From: Pseudomonas aeruginosa PAO1
Lineage (GTDB): Bacteria > Pseudomonadota > Gammaproteobacteria > Pseudomonadales > Pseudomonadaceae
Reading direction: 5' to 3' (one strand)
DNA length: 64,000 nt
Assembly: GCF_000006765.1 (NCBI RefSeq)
Contig: NC_002516.2
The notes under the pieces were generated by a model, which was not told the origin of the DNA, did not search any database, and saw only the letters and a list, made by a program, of their open reading frames with translations. A program made the translations under genes and the position numbers. Below are positions 12,884 through 53,497 of the stretch, one piece after another; the stretch's first letter is position 1; the number at the start of each line of letters is the position of its first letter.

Positions 12884-12942
12884 GTTTCACTCCATGGCAT
12901 CCCGGCCTCCTTTCTGCCGGAGAGCCGCGATCGATTGTCGGG

Positions 12943-12973
12943 AAAGAAAAAAGAAGCGCCGGCGCAGCGGCGC
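12943..12973 (-). terminator. Intrinsic terminator-like hairpin between sdaA and gcvT2
   Basis: GCGCCG/CGGCGC stem (12956-12973) followed on the minus strand by TTCTTTTTTCTTT. Confidence 0.6.
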
Positions 12974-12976
12974 GGT

Positions 12977-14353
<1,377 letters not shown>

Positions 14354-14400
14354 GCTCGTCTCCGCTTGCGGATTGGCCGCCACCATGGCGGCGCTCCTGT

Positions 14401-15657: not shown

Positions 15658-15799
15658 GGCGCTGGCCTCTTGTCGTGTCGGTGTCAGGACGCTCGCTGGC
15701 GCGAGCGTGGCCGCGGCGCCGCTACGCAAGCGCGGCGCCGGGAAAGGGGTATCGCCGGAAACGCGAGGACGCCGCCGCTGGCGGCGCCCTCCTCGTCCG

Positions 15800-18679
<2,880 letters not shown>

Positions 18680-19336: not shown

Positions 19337-20255
19337 GCCGATGGCACAGCCCCTGTCGCTGCAAGCTGGCGCGCAGGTGCTCGAGGAACGCGCGGACCTT
19401 CCGCGTGTTGCGCCGGTGCCCCGGATAGAGGACATGGATGGAGGGCCCGAACGGCCCCGGGTCGAAGTGGTAGTCGCCGAGCAGGCGCACCAGCCGCCCT
19501 TCACCGAGCAGCGGCGCGACGCTCCACTGCGGGCAGAACTGCAGGCCCAGCCCGGCCAGCAGGTGGGCGAGCAGGAAGTCGTAGTTGTCGCTGGCCAGTC
19601 GCGGGCGCGGCTGGTCGATACGCTGGCGGGCGCCGTCGCGCTCCATCCACCAGAAGTTCTGGTTCAGCGAAGGGTGCTGGAAGACCAGCCAGGCGTGCCG
19701 CTCGAAGTCCTCCGGGCCTTGCGGCGCGGGTTGCCGCGCCAGGTAGGCGGGGCTGGCGCAAAGCACGATCTGGTTCGGCGCCAGCGGCCGCGCCACCAGC
19801 CCCGGCAGGTCGATGGGGCCGTCGCGCAGGCCGAGGTCGTAGCCGCCTTCGCTGAGATCGAGGAAGGTTTCGTCGAGGTCCACCCGCAGGCTGATCCGCG
19901 GATGCGCCTCGAGGAAGCTGGCGCAGGCCTGCTGGAGGAACGCCGCGGCGAACGACGGCGGCGCGGCGAGGCGCAGTTCGCCGCGCAACTCCGACTCCAG
20001 CAGTTCGATCTCCTGCCCCGCCGTGCGCAGCGTTTCCAGGGACTGGCGGGCCGCCTCCAGGTAGATCTGCCCGGCCTCGGTCAGCGCCAGGCTGCGGGTA
20101 GTGCGCTCGAACAGGCGGGCACCGAGTTCCGCTTCCAGGTGGGCGACGGCCTTGGTCAGCGCCGAGGGCGTCTTGCCCAGGCGCTCGGCGCCACGGCTGA
20201 AGCTACCGGTTTCGGCAGTGGCGACGAACATCGCCAGGGCATTCAATTTGTCCAT
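19332..20255 (-). CDS. LysR-family regulator (307 aa)
   Basis: MDKLNALAMFVATAETGSFSRGAERLG...LFERTTR; divergent from the amidohydrolase. Confidence 0.93.
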   Translation of the reverse strand: MDKLNALAMFVATAETGSFSRGAERLGKTPSALTKAVAHLEAELGARLFERTTRSLALTEAGQIYLEAARQSLETLRTAGQEIELLESELRGELRLAAPPSFAAAFLQQACASFLEAHPRISLRVDLDETFLDLSEGGYDLGLRDGPIDLPGLVARPLAPNQIVLCASPAYLARQPAPQGPEDFERHAWLVFQHPSLNQNFWWMERDGARQRIDQPRPRLASDNYDFLLAHLLAGLGLQFCPQWSVAPLLGEGRLVRLLGDYHFDPGPFGPSIHVLYPGHRRNTRKVRAFLEHLRASLQRQGLCHRL

Positions 20256-20377
20256 CGACTCCTTCCGTTCCGGCACAAGTGTTGTGCGCCGCGCCCGGTT
20301 CTGCCGGGCCGGCGCTTTGGCTAGTCTCGCCTTGCCCGGGCCACGCTACACAAGACCAAGAAGCAAAGGAAACCACC

Positions 20378-22120
20378 ATGAAGCAACGGATTCCCACCCT
20401 CCTCGCCGGCGCCTGCCTGGCCATCCCCCTGCACGCCCTCGGCGCCGCCGACCTGCTGGTGGTCAACGCCAGGATCTTCACCGCCAATCCGCAGCAACCC
20501 TTCGCCGAGGCCCTGGCGGTAGAGGACGGGCGGATCCTCGCGGTCGGCGACGAGGCCGGGCTGCGCGCCCTGGCCGATGGCGACAGCCAGGTCGTCGATC
20601 TCGGCGGCAAGCGCCTGATGCCCGGCCTGATCGACACCCATTCGCACGCGGTGTTCGGCGGCCTGGAGCTGGCCGGCGCGGACATGGGCAACGAACAGGT
20701 CGGCCTCGACGAACTGGAACGGCGCCTGCGCGCCTGGCGCGACAACGGCAAGGCGCGACATGGCGACATGCTCAATGTCAGCGGCATGCATACCGCCTAC
20801 TGGAGCCAGGTCAAGGACTTCCGCGCGCGCTTCGACCACGGCGAATGGGCCGACCAGCCGCTGGCCTTCATCGGTAGCGACCACCACACCGGCTGGGCCA
20901 ACGCCGCCATGCTGAAACGCGCCGGCATCGACGCCGCGCGGGTCCGCGCCCTGCCCGAGGAACAGCGCAACACCATCGGCCACGACGCCGACGCCACCCC
21001 CAACGGCTTCCTCGCCGATGCCGGTCTCGACGCGGTGCTCGCGGTACTGCCGGCGCCGAGCGCGGAACAGATGCTAGAAGCCGGACGCAGCGCGGTGCGC
21101 TACAGCAACTCGCTGGGCCTGACCGCATGGATGGACCCGGCCGCCAATGGCTCGCCGGGCGATGCCCTGTTCAGCCTCAGGCCCGACGAGAACACCGTCG
21201 GCGTGCTACCGGTCTACCACCGGCTGGCCAAGGGCGGCGAACTCAGTGCCCACGTCGCCGCCCTCCTGGTCGCCAACCCACGCAGCCGGCCGACCGACCT
21301 CGAGGTGCTGGACAAGGTGCGCCAGCGCTTCCTCGGCAGCCCCAACCTGACCCTGCCGGGAATCAAGGTGTTCGCCGACGGCGTACCGGAATACCCGGCG
21401 CAGACCGCCGCGCTCCTCGAGCCCTACCGCAACAGCAGGAAGACGGGCGAACTGCTGATCGACCCGGCGCACTTCGGCGAACTGGTCAGCGCCGCCGACG
21501 CCCGCGGCTGGCTGGTCCACGTCCACGCCATCGGCGACCGCGCGGTGCGCGAGGCGCTGAACGGCATGCAGCAGGCGCGGCGCGACCGCGACAGCGGCAT
21601 CGCCCATTCGATTACCCACCTGCAACTGGTCAATCCCAAGGAGTTCGAGCGCTTCAGGCCGCTTGGCGTGATCGCCTCGATGCAGCTGTACTGGGCCGCC
21701 GCCGACGAAACCACGGTGGACCTGATGAAGCCCTATATCAGTGCCTTCGCCTACCGCTACCAGTACCCGGCGCACTCCCTGCTGAGCAAGGGCGCGACCA
21801 TCGCCGGGGCCAGCGACTGGCCGGTGTCCAGCCTGTCGCCGTGGAAGGCCATCCAGCAGGCGGTGACCCGCAAGGGCCCGCAGGGCGTGCTCAACGCCGG
21901 CGAACGCCTGGACCGCCAGACCATGTTCTACGCCTACACCCGCAACGCTGCGCGGACCATCGGCCTGGAGCACCGGATCGGCAGCCTGGAGCCGGGCAAG
22001 CAGGCGGACTTCATCGTCCTCGACCGCGACGTGTTCGAGGTGCCGGAGACGCAACTGGGCGAAACCAAGGTGCTGAAGACCTGGTTCGCCGGCAAGCCGG
22101 TGTATTCCAGCGAGGGCTGA
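20378..22120 (+). CDS. Exported amidohydrolase-3 (YtcJ-like) metallohydrolase (580 aa)
   Basis: RBS AAGGA, signal peptide, PGLIDTHSH, HVHAIGDRA, ITHLQ, SDWPV. Confidence 0.92.
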   Translation: MKQRIPTLLAGACLAIPLHALGAADLLVVNARIFTANPQQPFAEALAVEDGRILAVGDEAGLRALADGDSQVVDLGGKRLMPGLIDTHSHAVFGGLELAGADMGNEQVGLDELERRLRAWRDNGKARHGDMLNVSGMHTAYWSQVKDFRARFDHGEWADQPLAFIGSDHHTGWANAAMLKRAGIDAARVRALPEEQRNTIGHDADATPNGFLADAGLDAVLAVLPAPSAEQMLEAGRSAVRYSNSLGLTAWMDPAANGSPGDALFSLRPDENTVGVLPVYHRLAKGGELSAHVAALLVANPRSRPTDLEVLDKVRQRFLGSPNLTLPGIKVFADGVPEYPAQTAALLEPYRNSRKTGELLIDPAHFGELVSAADARGWLVHVHAIGDRAVREALNGMQQARRDRDSGIAHSITHLQLVNPKEFERFRPLGVIASMQLYWAAADETTVDLMKPYISAFAYRYQYPAHSLLSKGATIAGASDWPVSSLSPWKAIQQAVTRKGPQGVLNAGERLDRQTMFYAYTRNAARTIGLEHRIGSLEPGKQADFIVLDRDVFEVPETQLGETKVLKTWFAGKPVYSSEG

Positions 22121-22127
22121 GCCCGCT

Positions 22128-23663
<1,536 letters not shown>

Positions 23664-23744
23664 GCGGGAACCTGGACTGCGGCGACGCTCGCCATAAAGC
23701 CGTCGATTGTACGGCCTGGCGCCGCCCAGCCCAAGGGGCCGGCG

Positions 23745-24671
23745 TCAGGGTACGGGGCGCAGCGCCTCGCTGCGGGTGCGGTGGCTCCAGTCGCCCTCGT
23801 CGGCCATCACGGTTTCGGTCACCAGCACTCGGCCCGGCTGCTGCGGGTCGGCCTTGTACAGCACCAGTTCGGCCTCGGCATCGTCCCAGGTGGTGGAGAT
23901 GTCCGGCAGCACCCGCACCCACTGGCCGTCGCGGATTTCCAGCAGCGACGACTTGGTCCAGGTGCTGGTCCACCAGGTACGCAGCAGTTGCAGGCGCTCG
24001 CGGCCGCTGTCGTCGAGGCCGCCGAGGACGCTGAGCACCGCGCCGGTGCAACTGCCCAGCGGCTTGGGCGGGACGCGCGCGTCGGCGCTCCAGAGGTCGC
24101 AGCGGCAATCCTCGTATTCGTCGCACAAGGCGGCGCTGTTCGGCGCGTGGGCCACTACCCAGGCGAAGTCCGCCTCGGTACCGGCGAAGCGGCCGCGAGC
24201 CAGCGGGGTGTACCGCGGGTCGACGGCGTAGCGGGTGATCTCGTCGCTCTCGCCGACGAAGCGCCAGGTATCGCCAGGCCCGGCGCGCTCGGCCAGGAGC
24301 AGCCCCGGATAGTTGCGCAGGCGTCCGTCGAGGCGTACCTGCTTGACGAAGCGCACCTCGTAGCGGCCTTCCTGGTCGCCCGGCACGATCTGCGGCGCAG
24401 CGACGATGCGCTGCTCGAAGTCGGGATGGCGGGCGAAGAAGGCCTGCTTGGCGGAGAGGGTGCGCTCGCGCGTCTGCGCGCGGCCATAGTAGTCCAGGCG
24501 CGGCGCATAGACCCCTTCCAGGGCCTTGCCGCTGCGCTGCCCGTGGGCGGCCTGCCAGCGCTGGAACAGGCCGAGGATTTCGCTTTCGGCGGCAGCCTGG
24601 ACCAGCGCTGGGTACAGGCAGAAGAGCGCGGCGCAGAATACCGGGTGCAAGAGTCGGCGCATCGAGAACAT
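23745..24671 (-). CDS. Exported hypothetical protein with an NTF2-like N-terminal domain and a Cys-containing C-terminal domain
   Basis: Signal peptide ending LVQA, then EILGLFQRWQAAH...YAPRLDYYG; start may be 24662. Confidence 0.75.
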   Translation of the reverse strand: MFSMRRLLHPVFCAALFCLYPALVQAAAESEILGLFQRWQAAHGQRSGKALEGVYAPRLDYYGRAQTRERTLSAKQAFFARHPDFEQRIVAAPQIVPGDQEGRYEVRFVKQVRLDGRLRNYPGLLLAERAGPGDTWRFVGESDEITRYAVDPRYTPLARGRFAGTEADFAWVVAHAPNSAALCDEYEDCRCDLWSADARVPPKPLGSCTGAVLSVLGGLDDSGRERLQLLRTWWTSTWTKSSLLEIRDGQWVRVLPDISTTWDDAEAELVLYKADPQQPGRVLVTETVMADEGDWSHRTRSEALRPVP

Positions 24672-24818
24672 CCTTGTCGTTCGATTGAGGCGAACGCCGA
24701 TTGTCCCCTATCCGCCGACGCTGGCAAATGGCCCTGGACGATTTTTTCCGATTCCGCAACGCGGTGGGCATTGCGGACACGCTCCAGACAGCCTTCCCCC
24801 ACCTCCAGGCCGCGGCAC

Positions 24819-24846
24819 GGCGGATAACCGCAAGCGGCTATCCGCC
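24819..24846. repeat. Single REP-like palindrome, same family as 1856-1888
   Basis: GGCGGATAACCGCAAGCGGCTATCCGCC. Confidence 0.7.
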
Positions 24847-24865
24847 CCACGCCAGCCAGCGCGGC

Positions 24866-26445
24866 TCAATGCGCCGGCAACAAGGCCTGCAACCCTTCGG
24901 CAAGCTCCAGGCTCCACGCCGCGTAGTCGTGACCGCCGGGGAACTCACGGTAGTGCAGCGGGTAGCCCTTGCCTTGCAGCGCCGCGCGCAGGCTGCGGTT
25001 GCTGCCGAGAATGCCGTCCGCCTCGGGCTCCTCGAGCAGGCCGGAACTGAGGAAGAACGTCAGCGGCAAACGCTCGCCAGCGGCGAACTGCCGTACCAGC
25101 CACTGCGGCTGCTGCTCGTCCGGCCCCCACCAGAACGAGCCGGACAGGCTCAGCACCTTGCCGAAGCGTTCCGGATAACGGTAGGCGATGCAGCCCGAGG
25201 CCAGCCCGCCGTAGCTGGAACCGGAAAGCACGCGATCGGCAGGCTCCTCGCTCAATGCATAGCGCTGCTGCAACCAGGGCAGCAGCTCGTGGGCGAGCAT
25301 GTCGGCGAAGGCCTCGTTGCAGGGCAGCTCGCGGCCCCGGCTGCTGGCGTCGACATTGCCGACAATCACCGCCAGGGTCGGGCGGATACGCCCGGCGGCG
25401 ATCAGGTTGTCGAGGATGGTCGGGGTCGGTACGTCGCGCGCGTAGTGGTCCTCGTCGAACAGCACCAGCAGCGGATAGCGCTGGCCCTCGGGATCGTAGC
25501 CCGGCGGCGTGTAGAGCGTCAGTGGCGCTGGTTGGCCAGGGCCTGGCTGCTATAGCCGAGGCGCTCCACCTTGCCGCGCGGCACGTCCTTGCGCGGCTGG
25601 TCCCAGGTCTCGGCAGGGGCGCCGCCGAGCTGCACCAGCGAGGCCTGCTCGGCCCGCGGCAGCGCGCGGCTATTGAGCCACGGCGTACGGCTCAGCGGGT
25701 CCGGCCGCGCCGCCGCCTGCAAGGCCAGGCGCAAGGTGCCGCGATCGGCCTGTTGCAGGTCCGGCAGGTCGGCGCTGAGCTGGTAGGAAACCCGCGCGTC
25801 GCGGCGCAGCGGCAGGCTCAGGTAGCGTACGTCGCTGCCGGCCAGGGCCTCGAAGCGGCGGGTGTTGACCTCCGGGGTCGGCCACAGCAGGCGCACGTCG
25901 CCGGGACGCTGCTGGCGCCAGAGGAAGGTGACCAGCACACGTTCGGCATCCAGCGGCTCCACCAGCGGCGTGCCCTGCTTCGCTACCTGCTTCCAGAACG
26001 CCTTCAGCGCGCCGGGGCGCTTTTCCGCAAGCTCCGCCTGCAGGCGTTGCAGGGTCGGGCTCTGCGGCACCGGTGAATCAAGCGCCGGGGTCTGCGGGGT
26101 GAGGCGCTGGGTGGGGATCAGGGTCAGTGCGGTGTCTTCGTCGGCGCTGAAGGTCAGGCGCAGGCCCTGGCGCTCGCCGGCCTGCAGGCCGAGCGACTGG
26201 CGTCCGGCCAGCTCCGTCGCGCGCAACGCCTTGCCGTCGGGCGTGGTGGCGCGCAGGCGGACGCGGCCGCGGTCGACCTCCAGGTCGAGCAACTGCAACT
26301 CGCCGGGGGCAAGGTCGAGGTAGCGCTGGCGGCTCTCGCCGGCAGCGATCTCGATGCGGCCATCGGCCAGCGGCACGGGCTGGGCGGCCTGGGCCGGGGT
26401 CAGCAGGTTGAGGAAAAGCAACAACGAGGTGGAAACGGCAGACAT
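24866..26445 (-). pseudogene. Fes/enterochelin-esterase-like alpha/beta hydrolase with a signal peptide, split by a 1-nt frameshift near 25520
   Basis: 5' part ends ...ALANQRH*; the next frame continues TLYTPPGYDPEGQRYPLLVLFDED to GSSYGG. The span is 1580 nt, one short of a codon multiple. Confidence 0.85.
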
Positions 26446-26601
26446 GGAATCTCCCTTCGAAGAGGCGCCGCCATCCGGGCGGCTCACCGGAAGAGACGTA
26501 CGATCACAGCGGAAATTTGCCGCTGTGATCCAGGCTAGAGCGGTTGCGCCGCGACTGGAGTAGAATCCGCCGCCTCGAAAACCGTCCGAAGGAAAATTCC
26601 G

Positions 26602-26823
26602 ATGACCTCCCGTCTGCTGCCCGCCCTGTTGCTCTCGTCCGCATTCGCCGTCCTGGCCGGCTGCTCCACCCCGACCATCGTCACCCTCAACGATGGCCGC
26701 GAGATCCAGGCGGTGGATACCCCGCGCTATGATCGTAGTTCCGGCTTCTACGAACTGGAGCAACTGGACGGCAAGCGCACCCGCGTCAACAAGGACCAGG
26801 TGCGCAGCATCAAGGACATGTAA
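26602..26823 (+). CDS. YgdI/YgdR-family lipoprotein
   Basis: Lipobox LAGC, then STPTIVTLNDGREIQAVDTP...RVNKDQVRSI. Confidence 0.9.
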   Translation: MTSRLLPALLLSSAFAVLAGCSTPTIVTLNDGREIQAVDTPRYDRSSGFYELEQLDGKRTRVNKDQVRSIKDM

Positions 26824-26876
26824 TCCCCCGGACCCGCCATCCGCGCGGTGGCACACTCCAGGGAAGGAGTCGAACC

Positions 26877-27728
26877 ATGCGATCCGACCTGCACGAGGCC
26901 AACCGGCTGTCGTGGAACGCCGCCACCCGGGCGCACAACAGCCACAAGGCCGACCAAGCCGCCTTCTTCCGCAACGGCGGTTCCACGCTCTATCCCGAGG
27001 AACTGCAACTGCTCGGCCATCTCGACGGCCTGCGCCTGCTGCATCTGCAATGCAACGCCGGACAGGACAGCCTGAGCCTGGCGCGCCTTGGCGCCCGCGT
27101 CACCGGGGTCGACATCGGCGACAGCGCCATCGACTTCGCCCGCCAGCTGTCCCGCGACAGCGGCATCGCCGCCGACTTCCAGCGCGACGACATCCTCCGC
27201 TGGCTGCCCGTCGCCGCCACCCGCGGCGAACGCTTCGAACGGGTCTTCGCCTCCTACGGCACGCTGGTCTGGCTCTCCGACCTCAAGCGCTGGGCCGACG
27301 GCATCGCCCAGGTACTGGTTCCCGGCGGGCGCTTCGTCCTGGTGGAGTTCCATCCTTTCGCCCTGTACTTCGACCCACACTGGCAACCGGCCTACGACTA
27401 CTTCAGCCGCGAGCCGATCGCCGAGAGCGGCGTCAGCGACTACGTCGCCGAGTCCGGCGCCAGCCTGGCGCCCTCCGGCTACCGCGCCGGCGTCGAGAAC
27501 TTCAGCAACCCTCATCCCAGCTACGAGTTCCAGTGGGGCCTGGCCGATGTGATCGGCGCCCTGCTCGGCGCCGGCCTGCAACTCGAACGGCTGGAGGAAT
27601 ACCCCTACGCCAACGGCTGGGCCGGCTTCGACGGCATGCGCGACGGCGGCGGCGGACGCATGCTGCCGCCCGCCGATCGTCCGCGCCTGCCGCTGATGTA
27701 CGGCCTCAGCGCAAGGAAACCACGATGA
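26877..27728 (+). CDS. Class I SAM-dependent methyltransferase
   Basis: LLHLQCNAGQDS, VTGVDIG, LVPGGRFVLVEFHP. Confidence 0.9.
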   Translation: MRSDLHEANRLSWNAATRAHNSHKADQAAFFRNGGSTLYPEELQLLGHLDGLRLLHLQCNAGQDSLSLARLGARVTGVDIGDSAIDFARQLSRDSGIAADFQRDDILRWLPVAATRGERFERVFASYGTLVWLSDLKRWADGIAQVLVPGGRFVLVEFHPFALYFDPHWQPAYDYFSREPIAESGVSDYVAESGASLAPSGYRAGVENFSNPHPSYEFQWGLADVIGALLGAGLQLERLEEYPYANGWAGFDGMRDGGGGRMLPPADRPRLPLMYGLSARKPR

Positions 27729-28252
27729 CCGAAGAACGCCTGCTGCGCCGCGACGAAATCCCCCTGGTCTGGGAGATCGACCGCAGCGAAGTGATCGGAC
27801 ACCTGTATTCCGTCGAGGCCGGCCAACTGGTGCTGCGCCCCGAGTTCTACGACATGCGCGGCTGGCCGGAGGGCGAGGCCGAGCACTACACGCCGATCCT
27901 GCTCGACTGCTTCGACCGCGGCGGCTGGTTCCTCGGCCTGTTCGACCAGGGCCGCCTGATCGGCGCGGTAGTCCTCGACCCACGCCGCCTCGGCCCCGAG
28001 CGCGACTGGCTGCAACTGAAGTTCCTCCACCTCAGCCACGCCTACCGCCGCCGCGGCCTCGGCGCCCACCTCTTCCACCTCGCCGCCACCCAGGCCCGCC
28101 ACCTCGGCGCCAGCGCGCTCTACGTTTCGGCTACGCCGTCGCAGAACACGGTGGATTTTTATACGAGACTCGGATGCCGGCTGTGCATGGAACCGGATGA
28201 GGAGTTGTATCGGTTGGAGCCGGAGGATGTTCATCTGGTGTTCAATCTATAG
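27725..28252 (+). CDS. GNAT acetyltransferase (175 aa)
   Basis: ATGA overlap; LHLSHAYRRRGLG acetyl-CoA motif; NTVDFY. Confidence 0.9.
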   Translation: MTEERLLRRDEIPLVWEIDRSEVIGHLYSVEAGQLVLRPEFYDMRGWPEGEAEHYTPILLDCFDRGGWFLGLFDQGRLIGAVVLDPRRLGPERDWLQLKFLHLSHAYRRRGLGAHLFHLAATQARHLGASALYVSATPSQNTVDFYTRLGCRLCMEPDEELYRLEPEDVHLVFNL

Positions 28253-28308
28253 TCTGATGCTGAGTCTCGTTGATAATCAGCAGTGCAAATAGACTTCAAG
28301 GAATGGAA

Positions 28309-29898
28309 ATGTACAAAGCTCTCGCTTTTCTCCTGTTAAATACATTCATCGCCGTAGTGCATGCGGAGGAAGGCTGGGAGCTTTCAGTTTCAGGACCAGC
28401 CCCTGGACAACCTGAACACGTGCCATATCCAGATAGGCGACAACCCTCGCTCGAAGCCGCTTGCGCGGCCAGCGACAGGTACTATATAGATAGCAATCTG
28501 AAGGGTGGTCACGTAGTTCTAGGGTACATCAGCAGAAAAACACTTATAGATGCCCGATACAATTCATTTTTTTGCAGCATCAGCATATTCAGAAAGTCTC
28601 CGCTAGCAGCTACATCCGGCACTGCTACCTACGGAAATCCTAACTGGTGAGGGGCCTCCGGCACGGCTGTAAACGTTACTCAGGCTCCTCCAACTGGCTG
28701 CCCATACAACCTTTTCAATGGCCGGTACGAGTGCCCCACTGACGTCTCCGATCGAAAGAACGCGGGAATCCCCAACGAAAACGGATGCCAAGGCCCCTCA
28801 TCTTTCCAGGGAAACCCTATAAATGCCAGTATCGGCAATAAATTTCAACGTGAAACCGATATAGATCCGTCGCACTCCCCTCTCCAGTTCGAGAGATACT
28901 ACAACAGCGTTACCGGAATGTGGACGAACACCTTCCAGGAAGGCTTAAAAATAGTAGGCGAAAATATTTCCCTATCTCTACCCGATGGTCGTCAGGAACT
29001 ATTCAGGCTGACTGACGGCGCAATATCGTCCGACGCAACGACGGGTACACTTTCAAAAGACCAGGCAGGCTGGAGGTATGACTATAGGGACGGAACCAGC
29101 TCACTTTTCGATGTCCAGGGCCGGCTTATCCAGAGGAAAGTCAGGGGGCAGGTCATCACGATAACCTATCCGAACCTCTCCACCACCAAGGCTAAAGATG
29201 GGTTCGGAAACACCCTAACCGTTTCCTGGAACGCAACGAAACAACCCTACCTCGTCGATTACAACGGTTCCCTGAAAGTGGAATATCTATATGACGGGGG
29301 CGCCAGGCTGGTTTCGAAGAAAACCACGTCCCAAGGACTCAACCGCACCCGGAAGTATCTCTATGCTGACAGTGGCAATGCCGGGTTAATGGTTGGAATC
29401 ATCGACGAACAAGGCACGCGTTACGCCACCTGGACCTACGACAACCAAGGCCGCGCCATCTCCAGCGAACACGCCAACGGCGCCGAAAAGGTCTCCCTCG
29501 CCTACAACGATGACGGCTCCACCACCGTCACCAACGAATACGGCAAGCAGGCCACCTACCGCTTCCAGGTGATCCAGGGCATCAAGCGCATCGTCGCCAT
29601 CGAAGGGCAACCCTCGCCCAACTGCCCCAGCAGCAATTCCACCTTCACCTACGATGACCAGGGCCTGCTCACCAGCAAACGCGACAACAACGGCAACCTG
29701 ACCACCTACCAGTACAACGCCCGCGGTCTGGAAACCTCGCGCACCGAGGCCGCCGGCACTGCGCAGGCGCGCACCATCACAACCGACTGGCACCCGACCC
29801 TGTTCCTCCCGGTGCAGGTCAGCGAGCCCGGCCGGATCACCCGCTACCAGTACGACGCCGAGGGACGCAAGACCGGCGAGACCGTCACCACCCGCTGA
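28309..29898 (+). pseudogene. Signal-peptide Rhs/YD protein, N-half (DUF6531-like), interrupted by one in-frame TGA at 28648-28650
   Basis: The frame is otherwise open from MYKALAFLLLNTFIAVVHA through GNPINASIGNKFQRETD...FERYYNS to YD repeats ending TGETVTTR*. Confidence 0.85.
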
Positions 29899-29912
29899 CA
29901 AGGACGACACCC

Positions 29913-31151
29913 ATGCGCATCCCCCCCATACTTCCCCCGTCTCGGCGCCCTCGCCCTGGCCTGCGCCCTGGCCCTGCCCGCGCAGGCGGCCGAGCGCGCC
30001 TGGAGCTACAGCTACAACGCTCTCGGCCTGATCGAGCGCGCCGACGGTCCGCGCACCGATGTGCAGGACGTCACCCTCTATGCCTACGACAGTCGCGGCA
30101 ACCTGACCCAGGTGACCAACGCCCTCGGCCAGGTCACCCGCCTCGGCGACTATGACGAGCGCGGCAAGCCCGGCAGCATCACCGATGCCAACGGCGTCAC
30201 CAGCAGCCTCGCCTACACCGGCGTCGACGGCTGGCTGGCCTCCGTCAGCACCGCCGGCAGCACCACCCGCTTCGACTATGACGCGGTCGGCCAGATCACC
30301 CGCGTCACCCGCGGCGACGGCAGTTGGCTGAGCTACGAATACGACGACGCACGGCGCCTGGTAGCGATCGGCAACAACCTCGGCGAACGCCTCGAATACG
30401 ACGTCGACACCAAGGGCAATCGCACCGCCCAGCGCATCAAGGACGCCAGCGGCAGCCTGGTGCGTCAGCAGCAATGGGCCTACGACGAGCTTGGCCGGCT
30501 GCTCCGTGCGGTCGGCGCCGGCGGCCAGACACGCAGCTTCGCCTACGACCTCAACGACAATCCGGTCGGCGAAACCAACCCGCGCCAGTTCGCCCACAGC
30601 CAGGCCTTCGACGCCCTCGACCGGCTGGTCGGCCAGAGCGATCCCCTCGGCGGCAAGACCCGACTCGCCTACGACGCCCAGGACAACCTCACCGAGGTCA
30701 AGGACCCGCGCGGCGTCACCACCCGCTACGAATACGACGGCCTCGGCAACCTGACCCGACTGGTCAGCCCGGACAGCGGCACCACCACCTTCGAGCACGA
30801 CGCCGCCGGCAACGTCATCCGCCGCACCGACGCTCGCGGTACGGTCACCGAGTATCGCTACGACGCCCTCAATCGCCTGATCGAGCGCCACTCGCCGAGC
30901 GACCCGAGCCTCGACGTACAGTACCGCTACGACCTCACCGCCGACGGCAACAAGGGCATCGGCCGCCTGGGCTCCATCGAAGGTGCCCGCGACAGCCTGG
31001 TGTACCGCTACGACGAGCGCGGCAACCTGGTCGAGCAGGTACGCAGCATCCGCCTCGACCAGCAGACCCTGCTCGACCGCGTGACCTACCGCTACGACGC
31101 GGCCAACCAACTGCTGGAGATCGGCTACCCCTCCGGCCTCGCCATCCGGGA
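29913..31151 (+). pseudogene. Second signal-peptide YD-repeat Rhs gene, +1 frameshift in a C7 tract and 3'-truncated by a TIR element
   Basis: Removing one C at 29921-29927 gives MRIPPYFPRLGALALACALALPAQA-AERAWSYSY..., in frame with the YD ORF; no Rhs core or toxin remains. Confidence 0.85.
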
Positions 31152-31374
31152 AAAGGGGACAGATTTATTTTCCCTACTCTAGTTTTGTCTAGTGCTTATA
31201 TTTCTCATTTCTACTGTATACCACCGCCGATCTTACCCACACTGAACCACGTAAAGCGGATAGTTCAGTAAAACCACTCGCCTCTGCCTAGGCATCGCGG
31301 AGCCTCCTTACGGCGTCTGCACTGGAGCCTCCCTGCTCAGAAATCAGGGTAGGGAAAATAAATCTGCCCCCTTT
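31152..31374. mobile_element. Miniature TIR element copy 1 (223 bp) with a decayed Y1/RAYT-like transposase 5' end
   Basis: AAAGGGGACAGATTTATTTTCCCTAC (31152-31177) and its near-perfect inverted copy (31349-31374); minus strand TAAGGAGG-7nt-ATG(31295) MPRQRRVVLLNYPLYVVQCG*DRR. Confidence 0.85.
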
Positions 31375-31481
31375 ATTCGCTCAACCCGCATCTTGCCACC
31401 GGCCATCAAGTTAACACGTGACTGAACACGTCCAGGAACTTGAATAGAGGCTTCAGCAGTATTCGCAGTTCCTTTTGCATC

Positions 31482-32087
31482 TTATGCCAATTGCAAAAAT
31501 CTATACTTCCAATAATCCATACCCTCTAAAACCCAATACCTCTCCCTATCGGGTACTAAATGGCAAAAATCCGAACACTTAGCAAGCCAGTCTGAGTAAG
31601 CCAATTCTTCATGCGCCCGATTAAAGTCCATATGCATGTAAATTTTGCGATCGAAATTCACATAGAACATTGGAAGCCTAGAGGCAACAGTATTAGCGTC
31701 ATGAAAGTAGCTTGCACTCAACTCAACACCAGAAAGATAGTAACCTTCAATTCTTCCATGCAAAGACTCGCTCATATCAAGCCCGCACACAAACATATCT
31801 TTTAGGTCTTGCCGCGACAACACCCACCGTTCCCCCGCCCTCAAATATTTCAAAAAATTCTCAGCAGTAAGTTTAAGCACCCCACCTCTAAACGTCATGC
31901 ATGCCGACGCATATTGCTCCTGAGTTATATGACCCTTATCAAGGTATGCACGATAGTCCTTCTCCGCATCCAAGATGAAGTTGAATTTATCATCCACAAC
32001 CCAGAAGCACGCACCAGAATGAACAAAAAAGCATATATTTTTTTCACCCCCCCACAAATCATCAGCTAACAATTGCCACTGAGTCAT
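31482..32087 (-). CDS. AT-rich 201-aa protein, candidate orphan immunity protein
   Basis: Intact ORF in the cdi orientation; ATG overlaps the stop of a short upstream remnant. Confidence 0.75.
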   Translation of the reverse strand: MTQWQLLADDLWGGEKNICFFVHSGACFWVVDDKFNFILDAEKDYRAYLDKGHITQEQYASACMTFRGGVLKLTAENFLKYLRAGERWVLSRQDLKDMFVCGLDMSESLHGRIEGYYLSGVELSASYFHDANTVASRLPMFYVNFDRKIYMHMDFNRAHEELAYSDWLAKCSDFCHLVPDRERYWVLEGMDYWKYRFLQLA

Positions 32088-32129
32088 CTCCCAAACTCCT
32101 TCAAAAACTCGTCATGAGAGTATAAGCCA

Positions 32130-32353
32130 AAAGGGGACAGATTTATTCCTCCTACTCTAGTTTTGGCTAGTATTTATATTTCTCATTCCCACCGTATACC
32201 ACTGCCGATCTTACCCACACTGAACCACGTGAAACGGATAGTTCAGTAGAACCACTCGCCTCTGCCTAGGCTTCGCGGAGCCTCCTTACGGCGTCTGCAC
32301 TGGAGCCTCCCTGCTCAGAGAATTAGAGTAGGGAAAATAAATCTGTCCCCTTT
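32130..32353. mobile_element. Miniature TIR element copy 2 (224 bp)
   Basis: Same TIRs and interior as copy 1; remnant reads RQRRVVLLNYPFHVVQCG*DRQ; start codon mutated to AAG. Confidence 0.85.
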
Positions 32354-32360
32354 ATGGTCT

Positions 32361-32604
32361 GACATCCTGCTGGGCCGAAATAATTGCCCATTTGGCTTCT
32401 ATTCCTTTTGCAGAGCGGTTTTTCCTTGCAGCCATCGACCTCCTGCCGCTTCTTCTCCTCCTGCCAATGACTGAGGTAGTTGTGTTGGGTGGCATTCCTC
32501 GCCACCCAGGCTCCCGTCTGCAAGCTCTTGGCGTCCGCATCGCCCTGCGTCGAAGCCGCCAGCAAGCCGATCAACTGCGAACTCATGGTCAGCAGGCCCT
32601 TCTT
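32361..32604 (-). pseudogene. Orphan duplicate of the cdiA pre-toxin region (around TQHN), with a 2-nt deletion
   Basis: Near-identical to cdiA 34710-34955; ends 7 nt from the element 2 TIR. Confidence 0.9.
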
Positions 32605-32782
32605 CTCCAGGCAACGCATACGTTGCCCCGGCGAGCGACCCGCCAGGGATGGCGGGGCCGGAGGTTCAGGACTCTGCGGAAGTAGCGAAAGGGAGGTCAG
32701 TGCTCTTCTTTTAAAATCGAAAAAGTAAATTTTTAAAAAACAGGAAATTACTGAACGGGGAAGATCTACCTACCTTTTAGTT

Positions 32783-32856
32783 CTAGAGCAGTGAAAATAA
32801 ATCCGCCCCCTTTATGCTTCCAGAAACTGGGTAGGGAAAATAAATCTGCCCCCTTT
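32783..32856. repeat. Two solo TIR ends of the same element family
   Basis: CTAGAGCAGTGAAAATAAATCCGCCCCCTTT (32783-32813) and GTAGGGAAAATAAATCTGCCCCCTTT (32831-32856). Confidence 0.8.
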
Positions 32857-32871
32857 ATCCGCTCTGTCAAA

Positions 32872-33351
32872 TCAGCCTTTAATCGCACCAAAATTTTCCG
32901 GAATAAATCCTTTAGGCCAAATCGTTCTATCATTATATATGGCACCCCGAAAAACAGCGCCATCTATCCTCGCTACATCAATATTAACATCTCGCAAATT
33001 GGAATTTATGAAATTAGAACCGCCTATATCAGCATTTTTTAGACTAGCCATGGAAAGATCTGCCCCTGAAAAATCAGCATAAGCCGCCATAGCATCCACA
33101 AGTTTTACACCTTTCATTATAGCATCAACAAAACTTGCATTCATAAGCGCTGCACTATTCATTACAGCACCACCCAACAGAGCATGATTAAAAGAAGCGT
33201 TCCTCAAATTTGAGGCAGTAAAATCAGCCTCTGAAAGATCTAAACCATCAAAAATTGCCCGATGCAGCTCTAGCCCACTTAAGTTTGACTTAGCAAAATT
33301 ATCCAAAGGCAAATCCAGCTCTTCACCAGTTTCAAAAAAAATAGTTATCAT
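32872..33351 (-). CDS. Pentapeptide-repeat protein (159 aa), candidate orphan immunity protein
   Basis: A(D/N)FxxAxLxxAxF repeats; ATG 33351 overlaps an upstream TGA. Confidence 0.85.
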   Translation of the reverse strand: MITIFFETGEELDLPLDNFAKSNLSGLELHRAIFDGLDLSEADFTASNLRNASFNHALLGGAVMNSAALMNASFVDAIMKGVKLVDAMAAYADFSGADLSMASLKNADIGGSNFINSNLRDVNIDVARIDGAVFRGAIYNDRTIWPKGFIPENFGAIKG

Positions 33352-33408
33352 TTGTTCCCCCAATCCACTTGATCTATCTTCAGCTCAGACACAGGTTTGG
33401 TTTGGGAA

Positions 33409-33607
33409 AAAGGGGACAGATTTATTTTTCCTACTCTAATTTTGACTAGTGTTTATATCTCTCATTCCCACTGTATACCACTGCCGATCTTACCCACACT
33501 GAACCACGTGAAGCGGATAGTTCAGTAAAACCACTCGCCTCTGCCTAGGTCTCGCGGAGCCTCCCTGCTCAGAGAATTAGAGCAGGGAAAATAAATATGT
33601 CCCCTTT
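33409..33607. mobile_element. Miniature TIR element copy 3 (199 bp)
   Basis: Same TIRs and interior; lacks 25 nt deleted between GGAGCCTCC direct repeats. Confidence 0.85.
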
Positions 33608-33658
33608 ATGCTGCCCGAGGCCAGTATTTGAAAAAGCAAACGATGTATGTTTTAAAAA

Positions 33659-33913
33659 CTACGACTTCAAACCCTTCAAGTGTTTGAATGGACCTTCCTC
33701 TAAGTCAAACCCCATATCCAGGGCTAATTGTACAGCCTCGCGATATTCCTCATCCGTGATAGATACATCATATTCACAAATATGGTCACACAGAACTTCA
33801 AAAGCCAGACTTTCCTCATTGTATCCAACATAGTCTAGTGCTCCTTGAAGCAGCGTAGACTCTAGCCGCCCCTGGAATCTCTCCCCAAATTTGACAATAC
33901 GATCAGCGTACAT
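33659..33913 (-). CDS. cdiI: Cognate CDI immunity protein (84 aa), MafI-like
   Basis: Small acidic ORF starting 7 nt after the cdiA stop; ALDYVGYNEESLAFEVLCDHICEYDV. Confidence 0.8.
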   Translation of the reverse strand: MYADRIVKFGERFQGRLESTLLQGALDYVGYNEESLAFEVLCDHICEYDVSITDEEYREAVQLALDMGFDLEEGPFKHLKGLKS

Positions 33914-33920
33914 AAAAGAC

Positions 33921-36900
33921 CTATTTAATGGGCTTATAAGGTGGGATAGGTGCGTTGTCGGGGAAGGCTGTGATCACCTTTCCTGTAGCGGGCTGATAAA
34001 CAACGCGCATACGAACTCCATCACGAACCTCATAAGCAACCCATTTAGCGGGATCACCCTTGCTTGTATAAACCCCACCAGTTCCTGTTTGGGCATACCA
34101 TTTGGTACTAGGGGACGTCGCAATATCACCAACCTCGTGAACTATCTTATCTGCCGACCAGTTTTGAGGGAAAACTGTCTTCCCTGCCTGCCCCGGCCAC
34201 AAATGGCCACCACTCCCAGGTTTGTCGCCATACAAAATATGCTGTTTAGCTTCGTGGGAAAGAATATCGACATAACCTTTACCTCCCCCACCCAGCCGAC
34301 CCAAATCCCCCACTGCCCCAAGCTGCGAACTCATACTACCGGAAACAGGTGACTCCGCAATCGCGTTGACCAGGTTCTTGGCTGCTGTTGGCAGCTTGGC
34401 GGTTATCTGCGCGCCACCTTTCACTGCCGTCAGAACGCCAACAAGTTCCGCAGCGAACCTACCGCCCTCGACACCAGCTGTGACCGAACCTTGCCAGCCG
34501 GCATCCTCGTATGCCTGGGTCAAGAATGCGGCGCGCTCCTCCAGCCCCTTCAGGTAGTTATCGCCAAATTGCTGCCGGAACTCTGGCGAAGTGGCCAACT
34601 GCTCCAGAGCTGCATAGGTTTCCCTCCAGTTCTTGACCAGCTCATAAACACCCACTGCGGTTTCAGCTGTCGAAAGACCGATGCCTCCTCCAACACCTAC
34701 GACGATACCGACATCCTGCTGGGCCGAAATAATTGCCCATTTGGCTTCTATTCCGGTTTTGCAGAGCTGTTTGTCTTTGCAGCCATCGACCTCCTGCCGC
34801 TTCTTCTCCTCCTGCCAATGACTGAGGTAGTTGTGTTGGGTGGCATTCCCCGCCACCCAGGCCCCCGTCTGCAAGCTCTTGGCGTCCGCATCGCCCTGCG
34901 TCGAAGCCGCCAGCACGCCGATCAACTGCGAACTCATGATCAGCAGGCCCTTCTTGTCATCGATGGGCAGGCTGGCGTATTGCTTGGCGAGGCTATCCAC
35001 CAGCGCCTCGTTGACTCCCGCAGCCAGGGCTCCGGTACGGAAATCGCCACCGACCGCTTCGGCGGCCAGACCTCCCATCAGGGCGTGCAAGCCGATCTTG
35101 CCGAGGCTGCCGTCGTCCAGCACGCCATGGGTGGTGTCGCCAATCAGCTTGAAGCCGTAGGCCGCAAAGGCATTTGCCAGGCTGTTTTGCAACGCATCGC
35201 CCAGGCTGCCCTTGCCGCCCAGCGCCCGGTCCAACAGCACCGAAGTACCATTCTGCAGCAACTGGTTCGAGGTGAACTGGCCCACGCCTTGCCAGGTGCC
35301 CAACCCTGCGGCGGGCGCCACGGCCCCGGTGTTCGGTAGAGCGGTCGAGGTGCCGGTCTGGGTCGAGGTCCATTTGTCGTAGACGCCGGCAGTCAGCCCC
35401 GCAGTCGTGCCAGCGACTACATAGCCCCTCAGCGCATCGCTGGAGGTCACGTCCTTGACGACATCCCCCAGGTTTCCCCGGTTGTTGATGGTGCTGATCG
35501 CTCCATTGCTGGCCATGCCCATAGCCACGGCAGTTCCAGCTGCATTCGCCCAGCCGGCGGCAGCTGTTCCTACTGCTGTACCGGCCTGGACCATTGCAGT
35601 GCTACCGGCAGCAGCCATCATGCTTCCTGAGCCCGCCCCCACTCCCGCCATCGATCCCAATGCCGCACTCGCCGCACCCGCCGTGAAGTAGGCCACAACG
35701 ATCGCTATCGCCAACTGCGCGCCGACGCCCAGCCCGGAGTTGCTGTACTTCCAGCTGTCATGCAGTTCCTGCACGCGCCGCCAATCCACATCGCCGCGCT
35801 GCTCCATCTGCTTCAGCCAGGCCAGTTGCGGATCCGCCTGCACCATCGCGTCGATGGTCTGGCTCACGGTCTTCTGGTCGATGTGCTTGAGGTCGATCTT
35901 CAGCCCTTCCACGGCCTTGATCGCCAGATTCCCCTGGGCCACGATCTGGCTCTGGCGCACGGTTTCGTCGGTCTGGCCCTTGCCCTTCGACGACTGCCAC
36001 GCCAGGTCGCCCTTGCTCTTCTCGTGGCTTTCCTGGTGCAGGTCCTTTACCGCCTCGAAGGTCACCGCGCCGCCGCTGACGATGGCCAGGTCGTTGCCCG
36101 ATTCCAGCTTCGCGCCCTGGTAAGTCTGGTCGCCGCCACTGAGCAGGGTGAGGTCGCCGCCGCTGGATATTTGGCTGCCCACTGCCGTCACATCGGTGAT
36201 TTCGTCGCGCCGGGTCTTCTTGCTACCGAAGCTGCCTTTGCTCTTCTTGTCGTAGAGGTAGTAACTGCTGTCGTTCGCGGCCAGCAGCTCCAGCTTGTCG
36301 CCGGCCACCAGGTAGGCTTCGTCGCCGGCGCTGGCCTGGCTCGCGACCAGCCGCAGGTCCTGTCCGGCATTGATCGCCAGGTCGCCGCCAGCGTCCACGC
36401 GAGTGGCCTGCTGGGTGATCTTGTCGTCCTGGAAAGTGACCTTCTTGGTCTTGCCATAGGCATGCTCTTCGTTGGCAGCCGCGACCAGGCCCACATCGCG
36501 ACCCGCCTCGAATGTCACGTCGCGACGAGCGTCGATGCGGCTGCCCACGACGCTGATATCGCGTCCGGCGCTGACGCTGATATCGCGCCCCGCCACGACC
36601 TCGGCGCCCATCTGGGTCGTCTGGGTCTGGTATGCCTGGCTTCCTGCCGTCCAGCCCCGCTCCGCTACCGCAGCCGAAACCAGGACATCCCTGCCGCCTT
36701 GCAAGGCGAGGTCGCCCTTGCTGTCGATGACACCGCCAATATTGGCTACATCGCGTCCTGCCGAAACGGTCAGCTTCTGCGCAGCCTCGATACGCGCGGC
36801 GCTATCGGCAAATGCCTCAGTGGTACCGGTTCCCCTGTAGGAGGACTGGTGCTGGGTCACCGTCCGTTCATTGATGACGTCTCCGGTAAGGGCAGAGAGG

Positions 36901-39900
36901 CTTACCTCGCGCCCGGCAATGATGCCGCCCTGGTCATTGCGGATGGAGCCGCTGGCCAGCAGGTCGAGGCGGTTGCCGGCCTCGATCAGGCCGCTGTTGT
37001 CGATGTTGCCGGCTGTCGCGCTGAGGTCGTTCTGCGCGCGCAGGGTACCGGCGTTCCTCAGGTCCCCGCCGGTGATCAGGTTCACGTCGCGCCCCTGGAT
37101 CAGCGCGCCGTTCGGGCCCAACCGCCCCTCGGCCTGGGCCAGGTAGACCACGGGGGCGAGGACCTTTTCGCCATTCACCTCGACTTCTTCCAGCCAAACG
37201 ATATCGTGGGTCAGCGCCGCCACCTGGGCGGCGCTGAGGGTGACGCCAGGGGTCAGTCCCAATACGTCCTTGCTGGCGATGGCGTTGTCCATCAGATAGC
37301 GGAACATCGCTTCGTCGCTGTTCAATCCGGCGATGAAGCGCTGCCCCGTACGCTGGACGATCGCTTCGCGTACCAGGCGCTGCTCGTATAGACCGTCACC
37401 CAGGCGCTTCTTGCTATCGTCCGGATTGATACCCAGACCACCGAGCAGGTAGTCCGAGTTGAGGAACTGCTTCAGCTCGGTGAGCGCCGGGTTGGTCTCG
37501 ATCAGATACTTGTGGCTGTTGCTCGGTGTGGCATTGCTGGGCACGCCCTCAACGCGCGCAACCGACGGCAGGGTTTGCAACGCCGGCTGCCCAACCGGAG
37601 GCTCGGCAAGAAGGGCGCTCCGCTCTTCGAGGCGAGGCAGGCTGCCCTGAGCCCTAACGGCCGAAGGCAGTGCCTGCACCGACGACTGTTCAGCCGGCAG
37701 ATCGGCAAGGATGCTGCCATTGCCACCTGGACTGGAGACTACCCCCTCTACACGCACTGTCGAAGGCGAGGCCTGGACCGTCGCCTGCGCACCCTGCCAA
37801 TTGGCGAGAATAGTTCCATTCCCATCGTGACCGGGCACTGTGCCTTGAACATGATCAGACGCGGGAAGGCTTGAGAACGAGGGTAGACCACCGCGCAGAT
37901 CGGCGAGGATGACGCCATTGCCGCTGTGACCCGATGCATTGCCCTCGACGAGTCCACCCAGTCCCGTGGTCGCCTGGTGCTCACCGGCCTGGAAACGGCC
38001 AGTGTTTCCCCCGTCGCCCGAGATTGGCGCGGAAGCCCGTAGCGCATCGATAGCCTCAGCTACCCGGCCTTGATAGGCGGAACCGGCAAGCGAGGTGACC
38101 CGATCATCGCCGACACGACGCGCCTGGGTACTCCAGCCACTTGCGCCACTGCCTGTCTGTGCGGATACAGATACGCCATGGCCGCTCTGGGTGAGATCGC
38201 TGGCGGATTTCAGAGCACCACTTGCCTGGTTCACCTGGGCTCCTTGGGACGCCAGGCGGAAGAGCCCATTCTGGCCTTGAGGCAGGCTGAAGCCCGGCAG
38301 GGTGAGAGGATTGATCTGTTGCCTTGCCAAATCCGCTGGCAGTTGACTCTTCAGAGTCACTACGGCGCTCGTCGTGCTTGAAACAGCTATGTCCTGATGA
38401 GGTAACTGGGTTTCCTGAACGGCCTGAAATCCCTGTAGGACAGAATTATTGAAACTCTCCGCAGCATTCACCGTTACACGACCGCCAGCTTGCACGACAG
38501 CACCAACCGTTGAGTTCGCCCCTTTGTTAATCGTCAACTCATCGAGAGGAGCCAATCCCTTAAGTAGATCTGGAATAGCATCCGTTTTTTTCGATGAATA
38601 ATTCGGCGCCGGTATTCGTCCAATAGCCTTATTCCAGCGATCTGTGTCCGGATACTCAACATCTAAGGTACCGAAGTACAGGTGCCAACCCGGCCCACCA
38701 TTTTTCCCGTTTCCATGAATGACCTCCAGCGGAGAGACTTTTTCATTAAAATTCTTGTCGAAATAATGAATATTCGGAAGTCTCCCCCCTGTGCTCGCAT
38801 ATCCCTCCCCATAACTGGGATCGTTGACAGCGTTATACGCCAATATGCGCATAAGCAATTCTTCGCCAAATTTACTCGGCGGCGAATAAACGCCCCTGAC
38901 CGCATATTCCCCTAACGCATAACCTTTGTTTTCGAAATTACTCAGAGATAGCGTGGCGTCTCTTACAGCACTTATATTAGAAGCAATATTCTGCAGGCTT
39001 GCACCTACAACAAGCAGATCTCGACCAGCCGTAATTGAAGCAGCGGCAGAAGAATCTCCCAATGTAGACTTATATTCCCTGATCCAGACAAGCTCGCTCG
39101 AAGACCTAGTTTTTCCCCACCTCTCAGAAAGCTGACACCCCGTACAGCGGACGCCAATAGCGCTATTCTGCAAGTCACCTTCAATCTCTAGAGTTTCCCT
39201 TCTATTGAGAAGTGAACTCACGGAGAAACGCATATCACCTGTGCTCTCTAAATTCCCGGAAATGTTCTCCAAGCGATTTGCCCAGCCCCCCGCATCGTCG
39301 CGGGCGATATCCAGCCTGCCGAGGCTGTACACATCCCCGTAGAGGTTGGTGATGTCGCCGGCGCGCAGGGTCATGTCGGCGCCACTGAACAGCAACCCGC
39401 GCTCGTTGAGCAGGGCGGGCGCGTTCAATCGCAGGTTGCCGCCGCCGCCCAGGGTGCCGTAGTTGTTCAGGCTCGCGGCGCTGGCCACGAGGTCGCCGGC
39501 AGCGGTGATCCGCCCACGGTTGACCAGCAGGTTGCCGGCGCCAAGCGTGACATTGGCGCCGCCGGCGAGGCTGGCGGCATTGCCGAGGTCGAGGCTGGCG
39601 GCGTTCAGGGCGAAGTCGCCGAGGCTGGTGGCGCGGCCGTTGCCACGGTAGCCGCCGCTCAGCTCGAGTCGCAAGCTGCCGTTGCTGGCCAGCAGGCCGT
39701 CGTTGCTCCAGTCGCCGCCGCGGCCAGTGAAGGACTGCACCGCCAGCAGCTTGCCCTCGGCCGTCTGGCGGAAGGTGCCGATGTCCAGGTTCAGGCGTCC
39801 GGCTTGCAGCACGCTGCTGTTGGTCCATTCGCTGGCACGGATGTCCAGCAGGCCATTGGTGGTCAGTTCGCCGCCGGCGCGGATCACCTGCCCGGAATCC

Positions 39901-53451: not shown

Positions 53452-53497
53452 TCGTCCATCCTCTGGTGGTGTGGGAGGCAGCCAGACTAACAGCCGT

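Follow-up and report, generated by a model that had tools for sequence, protein, structure and literature searches.

A 64,000-nucleotide stretch of the Pseudomonas aeruginosa PAO1 chromosome (NC_002516.2; "the window" below means this whole stretch) carries, between positions 28309 and 31146, the remains of a rearrangement hotspot (Rhs) locus. We read these remains, with a probability of roughly 70%, as a copy, now decayed, of a conserved Rhs polymorphic toxin locus made up of two genes; both genes would encode Sec signals, and the two predicted chains would jointly close one cocoon. A sequence-only reading of this DNA had proposed a bipartite Rhs made of two secreted polypeptides. That proposal appears to hold for the family and fails for the window copy, which is broken and consists of pseudogene remnants rather than two working genes.

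The two-gene layout is conserved in intact relatives. A species scan with the gene 2 part, taking one genome per species, returned 70 loci. In intact loci, gene 1 encodes about 500 residues and is followed, after a gap of 14-32 nt, by gene 2 of about 900 residues and, on its 3′ side, by a small immunity-like gene. The gene 1 product opens with a signal peptide and an N-domain that is rich in Cys and hypervariable; next come a DUF6531 plug and roughly the first third of the shell of tyrosine-aspartate (YD) repeats. The gene 2 product has a signal peptide as well; it supplies the other two thirds of the shell and finishes with the Rhs core end and a polymorphic toxin tip. Intact two-gene homologues, which the sequence-only reading had proposed to collect, were found in every Pseudomonas relative checked (L001-L008, L010, L072-L074, L080 and L081) and on Marinobacter-type metagenome contigs (L075-L077), where the spacer is 24 nt and gene 2 again has a signal peptide. 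Besides other P. aeruginosa strains, the carriers of the split layout include several further species of Pseudomonas and one metagenome lineage of the Marinobacter type.

The boundary between the two genes is regular in its details. In L001-L008 and L010, the upstream open reading frame (ORF) has about 500-560 residues (1086 in L006) and ends with ..YxYDxxGR plus 9 residues, and the downstream gene (about 910-950 residues) begins with Met, a basic n-region, a hydrophobic core and an AxA-type site before ..ER.W.Y.Y. Gene 1 ends exactly 9 residues past the last YD-type motif in 110 of the 120 homologues listed. A hydrophobic N-terminal core is present in 72 of 87 gene 1 homologues that start with Met and have at least 450 residues. 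The second signal peptide, whose conservation the sequence-only reading had named as decisive, recurs throughout: all 43 scored gene 2 N-termini are signal-like, with a basic n-region, a hydrophobic core and a small-x-small site, and the first shell motif follows the Met after 25-32 residues.

A gene 1 profile made from 78 proteins was searched against 1.84 billion cluster representatives (50% identity). Among the best 150 matches, 141 have 310-668 residues and nearly all of these stop at the profile end; the other 9 have 1289-1696 residues. Intact gene 2 counterparts of 885-928 residues are P0121, P0123, P0124 and the gene 2 products of L072-L074, and the full-length P. aeruginosa gene 2 clusters hold thousands of member sequences. 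Judged from these sequences, the point at which gene 1 gives way to gene 2 is a conserved boundary and no local accident. The split family spans at least 140 clusters at 50% identity, together with thousands of P. aeruginosa genomes. Within the literature covered, full-text searches turned up no description of a split Sec-type Rhs, which is not proof of novelty.

Relatives in which the whole protein is a single ORF with one N-terminal signal peptide are also present; most of those named here are more distant (Alcanivorax L009, Thiobacillus L066, Lysobacterales L011 and L012, and L013), and P0205 is a closer one. In BLASTP alignments with the L004 chains, the end of gene 1 falls at residue 576 of the single-chain L009 and the start of mature gene 2 at residue 583, and the corresponding junction residues are 666/673 on L066 and 672/678 on L011. 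P0205 is a 1400-residue single chain with 62% identity, found on at least three contigs. Its residues 139-503 align with the gene 1 product P0001, the alignment with the gene 2 product P0123 begins at residue 508, and no signal-like insert was seen at this junction. The colinearity is exact and leaves no overlap, so both chains would be parts of one shell, and the split is a gene fission at one point between two YD repeats, where a stop codon, a spacer and a start codon were inserted along with a second signal. The sequence-only reading had stated that single-ORF homologues would speak against it; all Pseudomonas relatives checked have two ORFs, and single-ORF forms do exist in P0205, L009, L011-L013 and L066. 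One other reading was rejected. The gene 1 and gene 2 parts fall on overlapping positions of the NCBIfam RHS_core profile, which could point to two unrelated N-terminal Rhs fragments lying side by side; the exact colinearity with single-chain relatives excludes this, and the overlap is a register artefact of the repeats.

Structural comparisons agree with this placement. The gene 1 profile matches residues 258-548 of the solved Rhs 7pq5, that is, the N-terminal plug and first turns, and the gene 2 profile matches the C-terminal part of solved type VI secretion system (T6SS) Rhs proteins. An AlphaFold2 (AF2) model of an intact gene 1 product has a mean predicted local distance difference test score (pLDDT) of 82.6 and matches the first third of Rhs cores. 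The best match is the Salmonella bongori Rhs core 8qjd_B, with a query-normalised template modelling score (TM) of 0.55 and a root-mean-square deviation of 3.7 Å over 384 columns. In the AF2 model of gene 2 from an intact relative, shell residues 30-730 are confident, and the target-normalised TM is ~0.5 against Rhs cores and 0.66-0.68 against the C-subunit chains 4igl_B and 6l7i_G. According to these models, each chain would take the fold of the corresponding portion of a solved Rhs shell.

The split loci are polymorphic at both ends. Conservation per block is 0.13-0.23 in the gene 1 N-domain, which is hypervariable, 0.35-0.49 in the plug and first repeats, 0.67-0.77 in the last ~180 residues of gene 1, 0.58-0.83 in the gene 2 shell and 0.11-0.14 in the toxin tip. 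The N-domain of gene 1 usually has 5 or 7 cysteines, and the shell part has one. The gene 2 tips of relatives belong to Ntox34, Ntox44, Ntox37 or DUF4329, or have no Pfam match. GC is low in the tips, small genes come after them, and some loci also contain orphan Rhs C-terminal modules. The two most abundant intact P. aeruginosa gene 2 alleles, P0123 and P0124 (~3000 member sequences each), carry after the core end ..DPETGRYVESDP a Cys-rich tip without a Pfam match and not the stretch IGL..G..N..GY, which is the usual form after the core end and is present in P0121 and P0205. In L004 (Pseudomonas sp. 2FG), the small gene 3′ of gene 2 (12685-13266) has its own signal peptide, unlike at other loci, and this suggests that the toxin tip of L004 may act in the periplasm.

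Upstream of a lone gene 2, gene 1 is often present in two to four divergent tandem copies. The intact P. aeruginosa loci L072-L074, which lie at the same chromosomal site as the window locus, have two gene 1 copies of 529 and 506 residues and a gene 2 of 920-928 residues, followed by small genes of 171 residues and/or 78 residues (DUF7336). Two copies are found in L080 and four in P. tohonis L081. These tandem copies (L081 7636-13766; L080 625-3831; L074 8256-11521) are complete and most of them bear signals. Between array copies, the first part has 32-62% identity and the last 160 residues 84-93%. A different irregularity is found in L006 (Pseudomonas sp. 286; 6653-9910 and 13189-16395), where the open frame of gene 1 has 1086 codons, about twice the usual length. 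Orphan Rhs C-terminal modules, two in number, are present at this locus too, along with a further gene 2 start, which is cut and carries a signal peptide. The split could make the toxin modular at both ends, in that one gene 2 chain might pair with several alternative array-encoded N-chains, which vary in N-domain and plug region and mostly agree near the junction; the particle would then be a Sec-exported and smaller analogue of the two-chain BC cocoon. We put this forward tentatively and think it rather less probable than its opposite. If it were true, a cell could make several versions of the toxin particle without recombination, for example with differing targeting or surface properties.

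We propose the following mechanism for an intact locus. Each chain would cross the inner membrane via Sec, and its signal peptide would then be removed. The last beta-hairpins of chain 1 would pair with the first ones of chain 2 to form one cocoon around the toxin, and the core-end motif in gene 2 would free the toxin inside the shell, as in other Rhs proteins. Such a joint cocoon would resemble the BC cocoon of ABC toxins in function, yet it would be smaller and would form outside the cytoplasm. Like the sequence-only reading, we infer assembly in the periplasm and a route across the outer membrane.

Several points weigh against this proposal. The signal peptides were judged from simple sequence features rather than by a dedicated predictor, and the closure of one shell by two chains is deduced from colinearity and from single-chain models. 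No conserved secretion partner adjoins the loci, and their upstream neighbours vary by species. The array of L081 contains an exception, as the copy adjoining gene 2 has ~53% identity over the last 160 residues, compared with 88-92% among the other copies; some array copies therefore need not pair with the resident gene 2. Most of the downstream immunity-like genes lack signal peptides, so most of the toxins would themselves have to reach the cytoplasm of the target.

The alternative that survives best is that the two products act separately, with gene 2 alone forming a smaller closed shell and gene 1 serving as an exported adhesin, a receptor-binding helper or a chaperone. Each of the two genes indeed has a start and a signal peptide of its own, the model of gene 2 is a confident fold without gene 1, and two to four gene 1 copies per gene 2 fit poorly with a simple 1:1 partner. 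However, gene 2 has no plug and covers about half to two thirds of solved single-chain shells, as its TM of ~0.5 indicates, and it is gene 1 that supplies the plug and the missing first turns. The exact colinearity with single chains also argues for a shared shell, as does the conservation, which continues unbroken over the final ~180 residues of gene 1 and on into gene 2; we consider separate action unlikely.

Somewhat less likely still, in our view, is that the N-terminal hydrophobic segments are membrane anchors or relics; the shell would then assemble at the inner membrane or within it, or else in the cytoplasm, to be released by lysis as with ABC toxins. Cleavage of the segments is a prediction from sequence, and the BC cocoons of ABC toxins are known to assemble in the cytoplasm. 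Yet the n-h-c layout is the classic one at both N-termini, where an AxA-type site directly precedes the start of the shell, and the 5 or 7 cysteines of the gene 1 N-domain, against one in the shell, fit an oxidising compartment. A relic would also leave the gain of a second signal at the fission point unexplained.

That the Rhs pair is T6SS cargo, like most proteobacterial Rhs proteins, has very little to recommend it: the nearest solved structures are T6SS Rhs effectors, but each chain has a signal peptide; the Rhs genes and the window ORFs and gene calls examined contain no PAAR, VgrG or Hcp domain, in agreement with the sequence-only reading, nor one of Eag type, and none of these domains occurs within 7-10 kb on either side of related loci. 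Equally improbable is a local pseudogene artefact, in which a single Rhs ORF acquired a nonsense mutation followed by a chance Met and hydrophobic stretch; the window copy does bear other inactivating lesions and single-ORF relatives do exist, but the distribution refutes this idea, as the boundary, the spacer and the second signal recur at 55-80% identity in all Pseudomonas loci examined and on the Marinobacter-type contigs, the full-length P. aeruginosa gene 2 clusters have thousands of members, 141 of the 150 nearest clusters are of the short type, the short forms terminate at their own stop codons inside long contigs, and a single-chain relative has no signal-like insert at the junction.

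We now turn to the window copy, which we interpret as a decayed member of this two-gene family. One plus-strand frame holds all the Rhs coding of 28309-31146 (Table 1). In the gene 1 part, the Sec-type signal, the DUF6531 segment and the YD repeats described in the sequence-only reading were all recovered; the repeats (PF05593, TIGR01643) match Pfam and NCBIfam models with an E value of 2.6e-14. The intact 530-residue counterpart P0001 (809 member sequences) has 98% identity, and the 327-residue cut product of gene 1 has 414 member sequences. The stop of gene 1 is at 29896-29898, and the 14-nt gap with an AAGGA ribosome-binding site that had been noted before gene 2 leads to an ATG at 29913. 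For gene 2, the sequence-only reading had claimed a signal and resumed YD repeats. Both are encoded, as a signal-like ..LPAQA segment stands directly before ..AERAWSYSYN and the repeats match Pfam and NCBIfam models (E value 1.3e-59), but the ATG lies out of frame with them owing to one frameshift relative to intact relatives, and no in-frame ATG, GTG or TTG start is found 5′ of the signal peptide.

The 3′ part of gene 2 has been lost. Similarity to relatives stops at 31146, and the codons of the ORF that run on to 31182 are unrelated repeat DNA. The remainder of gene 2 was searched for elsewhere in the window and not found. The core-end RHS motif (PF03527, with its DPxGL-type toxin boundary) is absent from the window and present in intact relatives; likewise, the variable C-terminal toxin and the immunity gene, present in relatives, are gone from the window copy by deletion. 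Past 31146, the window is similar to a unit which, in L074, is located beyond both the DUF7336 gene and the intact gene 2, so the deletion took away all that followed in gene 2 as well as the small gene after it.

A second event can be read from the comparison with L072. Window positions 20051-29885 match L072 through its first gene 1 copy, and 29424-31146 match the second copy at its 3′ end, together with the spacer and ~1.2 kb from the start of gene 2. These blocks overlap because the 3′ ends of the two gene 1 copies are nearly identical, and the window therefore has one hybrid gene 1 in place of the two found in intact strains, mostly of the copy-1a type with final codons of the copy-1b type. 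The segment shared by the two blocks matches the 3′ ends of both tandem copies in intact strains and is likely the recombination site that left a single gene 1. In the conservation profile, it is also the start of the conserved Rhs core that continues into gene 2. The GC content rises from ~0.50 to ~0.70 within gene 1 near 29400 and is ~0.45 past 31150.

The exact truncated gene 2 product occurs in 1,814 blocks of the assembly collection, including complete P. aeruginosa chromosomes of ~6.26 Mb. Since this product and the 327-residue gene 1 product are both widespread, the lesions are real alleles and no sequencing errors. With three lesions (the premature stop, the frameshift and the 3′ deletion) and the loss of the second gene 1 copy, the window copy is decayed, and its reading frames predict that nothing functional is left.

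Table 1. Positions of the Rhs remnant and of neighbouring features in the window.
Feature	Position	Strand	Remarks
Gene 1 remnant	28309..29898	+	Signal peptide, variable N-domain, DUF6531 plug, first YD repeats; one premature stop
Sec-type signal peptide coding region, gene 1 (..VHA)	28309..28365	+	MYKALAFLLLNTFIAVVHA
DUF6531 (PF20148) plug-type domain, gene 1	28810..29004	+	Pfam E value 1.9e-8
GC-rich 3′ segment, gene 1	29424..29885	+	Overlapping homology blocks, GC, conservation profile
Gene 1/gene 2 spacer, 14 nt	29899..29912	+	AAGGA at 29900-29904; 14-32 nt in intact loci
Gene 2 remnant	29913..31146	+	Start, signal peptide, 7 RHS repeats; one frameshift near 5′ end, 3′ deletion
Orphan/immunity region of cdi locus (neighbour, outside the Rhs system)	31147..33920	-	Holds the four ORFs below
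cdi-region ORF	31482-32087	-	Open reading frame
cdi-region ORF	32323-32619	-	Weak PT-VENN
cdi-region ORF	32872-33363	-	Pentapeptide repeats, 163 residues
cdi-region ORF	33659-33913	-	Open reading frame
Unit of ~200-225 bp with ~33-nt inverted repeats (AAAGGGGACAGATTTATTTTCCCTAC...), first copy	31152..31374	.	Gene 2 remnant ends at its outer edge
Further unit copies	32130-32353; 33409-33607; solo arm 32831-32856		Separate orphan/immunity cassettes 3′ of cdiA

As the sequence-only reading had pointed out, the Rhs locus converges on a cdi array, with cdiA (33921-50804) and cdiB (50917-52614) on the minus strand. Relative to L072, the cdi island corresponds to window positions 31147-52926 and comprises cdiB, a cdiA of 5627 residues, cdiI and the orphan region. 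In L072, the Rhs locus has no cdi island and is followed directly by PepSY, TonB-receptor, FecR and extracytoplasmic function (ECF) sigma genes, which correspond to window positions 52927-58433; in L074, an intact gene 2 is combined with a cdi island that has a different cdiA tip. No two-partner secretion (TPS) domain or filamentous haemagglutinin (FHA)-type repeat was found in the Rhs genes, and the cdi genes are neighbours on the opposite strand.

The repeat unit at the edge of the gene 2 remnant recurs in the cdi orphan region. Its inverted-repeat arms give 7 matches, against 0 expected by chance, and the unit has no Rfam match. It may be a unit resembling a miniature inverted-repeat transposable element (MITE) or a cassette-boundary repeat, and may have mediated the deletion in gene 2. 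The pentapeptide-repeat protein among the cdi orphan cassettes stands in an unusual place for that fold and may be an immunity or decoy protein. A promoter scan found none, the terminator count was at chance level, and a comparison with Rfam yielded no RNA family. Upstream of gene 1, an exact look-up of a mechanical ORF of 519 residues (26693-28252) gave no match; at its position, a methyltransferase gene and a GCN5-related N-acetyltransferase (GNAT) gene of 175 residues are called in related loci instead.

The split family differs in definite ways from the systems that it resembles. T6SS Rhs effectors (RhsA 7q97, Tse5 8cp6, RhsP 8h8a/b, Tre23-Rhs 7pq5, Tse15 8uxt and S. bongori 8qjb-d) share the YD shell, the plug and the core-end motif and are the best matches in sequence and fold among solved structures. 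In contrast to the split pair, each of them is one polypeptide that lacks a signal peptide and is linked to PAAR or VgrG. RhsT of P. aeruginosa PSE9 (island PAGI-9) is an Rhs element without VgrG/Hcp linkage (PMC12629846) and was assigned to the type II secretion system ("T2SS") export type by Zhang et al. (PMC3482391). PAGI-9 is one large ORF between PA3835 and PA3836 (PMC4243448, PMC7809047), and a link of the window locus to RhsT was rejected, as the published descriptions set it apart as a different and unsplit locus. PAGI-10 is an Rhs element of ~2.2 kb and might correspond to the part that is missing from the window.

Rhs proteins of single-chain form with a Sec signal are the "T2SS"-type RHS toxins inferred from comparative genomics by Zhang et al. 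2012 (PMC3482391). They have the same order as the split family (signal, variable N-domain, DUF6531, YD shell, core end, toxin and immunity), with identity of up to 62%. The split family, however, cuts the shell at one fixed point, where a stop codon and a start codon flank a spacer with a ribosome-binding site and a second signal follows, and its gene 1 can multiply into arrays. WapA of Gram-positive bacteria is the studied example of the single-chain, Sec-signal class.

The BC subcomplex of ABC (Tc) toxins (4igl_B, 6l7i_G and 4o9x) forms one cocoon from two polypeptides, as we propose for the split pair, and its C-type chain, like gene 2, contains the last part of the shell, an autoproteolytic core end and a variable toxin. 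Unlike in ABC toxins, gene 1 encodes ~500 residues with DUF6531 and RHS repeats only, without a beta-propeller or SpvB/TcdB-mid, and there is no A subunit nearby: none was found among the genes called within 10 kb on either side of the P. aeruginosa loci. Both split chains are signal-bearing, whereas the BC subunits are cytoplasmic. The split Rhs pair is therefore outside the ABC-toxin family.

To our knowledge, proteobacterial Rhs cocoons have been studied almost solely as single-chain T6SS cargo, and BC of ABC toxins is the sole known two-chain cocoon. The split family adds what would be a cocoon cut at one fixed point, each half with its own Sec signal. It raises the questions of how a two-chain beta-shell would close outside the cytoplasm, how a Sec-type Rhs would exit a diderm cell, and why the N-terminal half is as polymorphic as the toxin tip. 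For annotation, a "DUF6531 domain-containing protein" of ~500 residues and the "RHS repeat-associated core" protein that comes next would be one system. Among the known systems compared here, the single-chain Sec-signal Rhs class is the closest family, and the BC cocoon of ABC toxins is the closest functional analogue.

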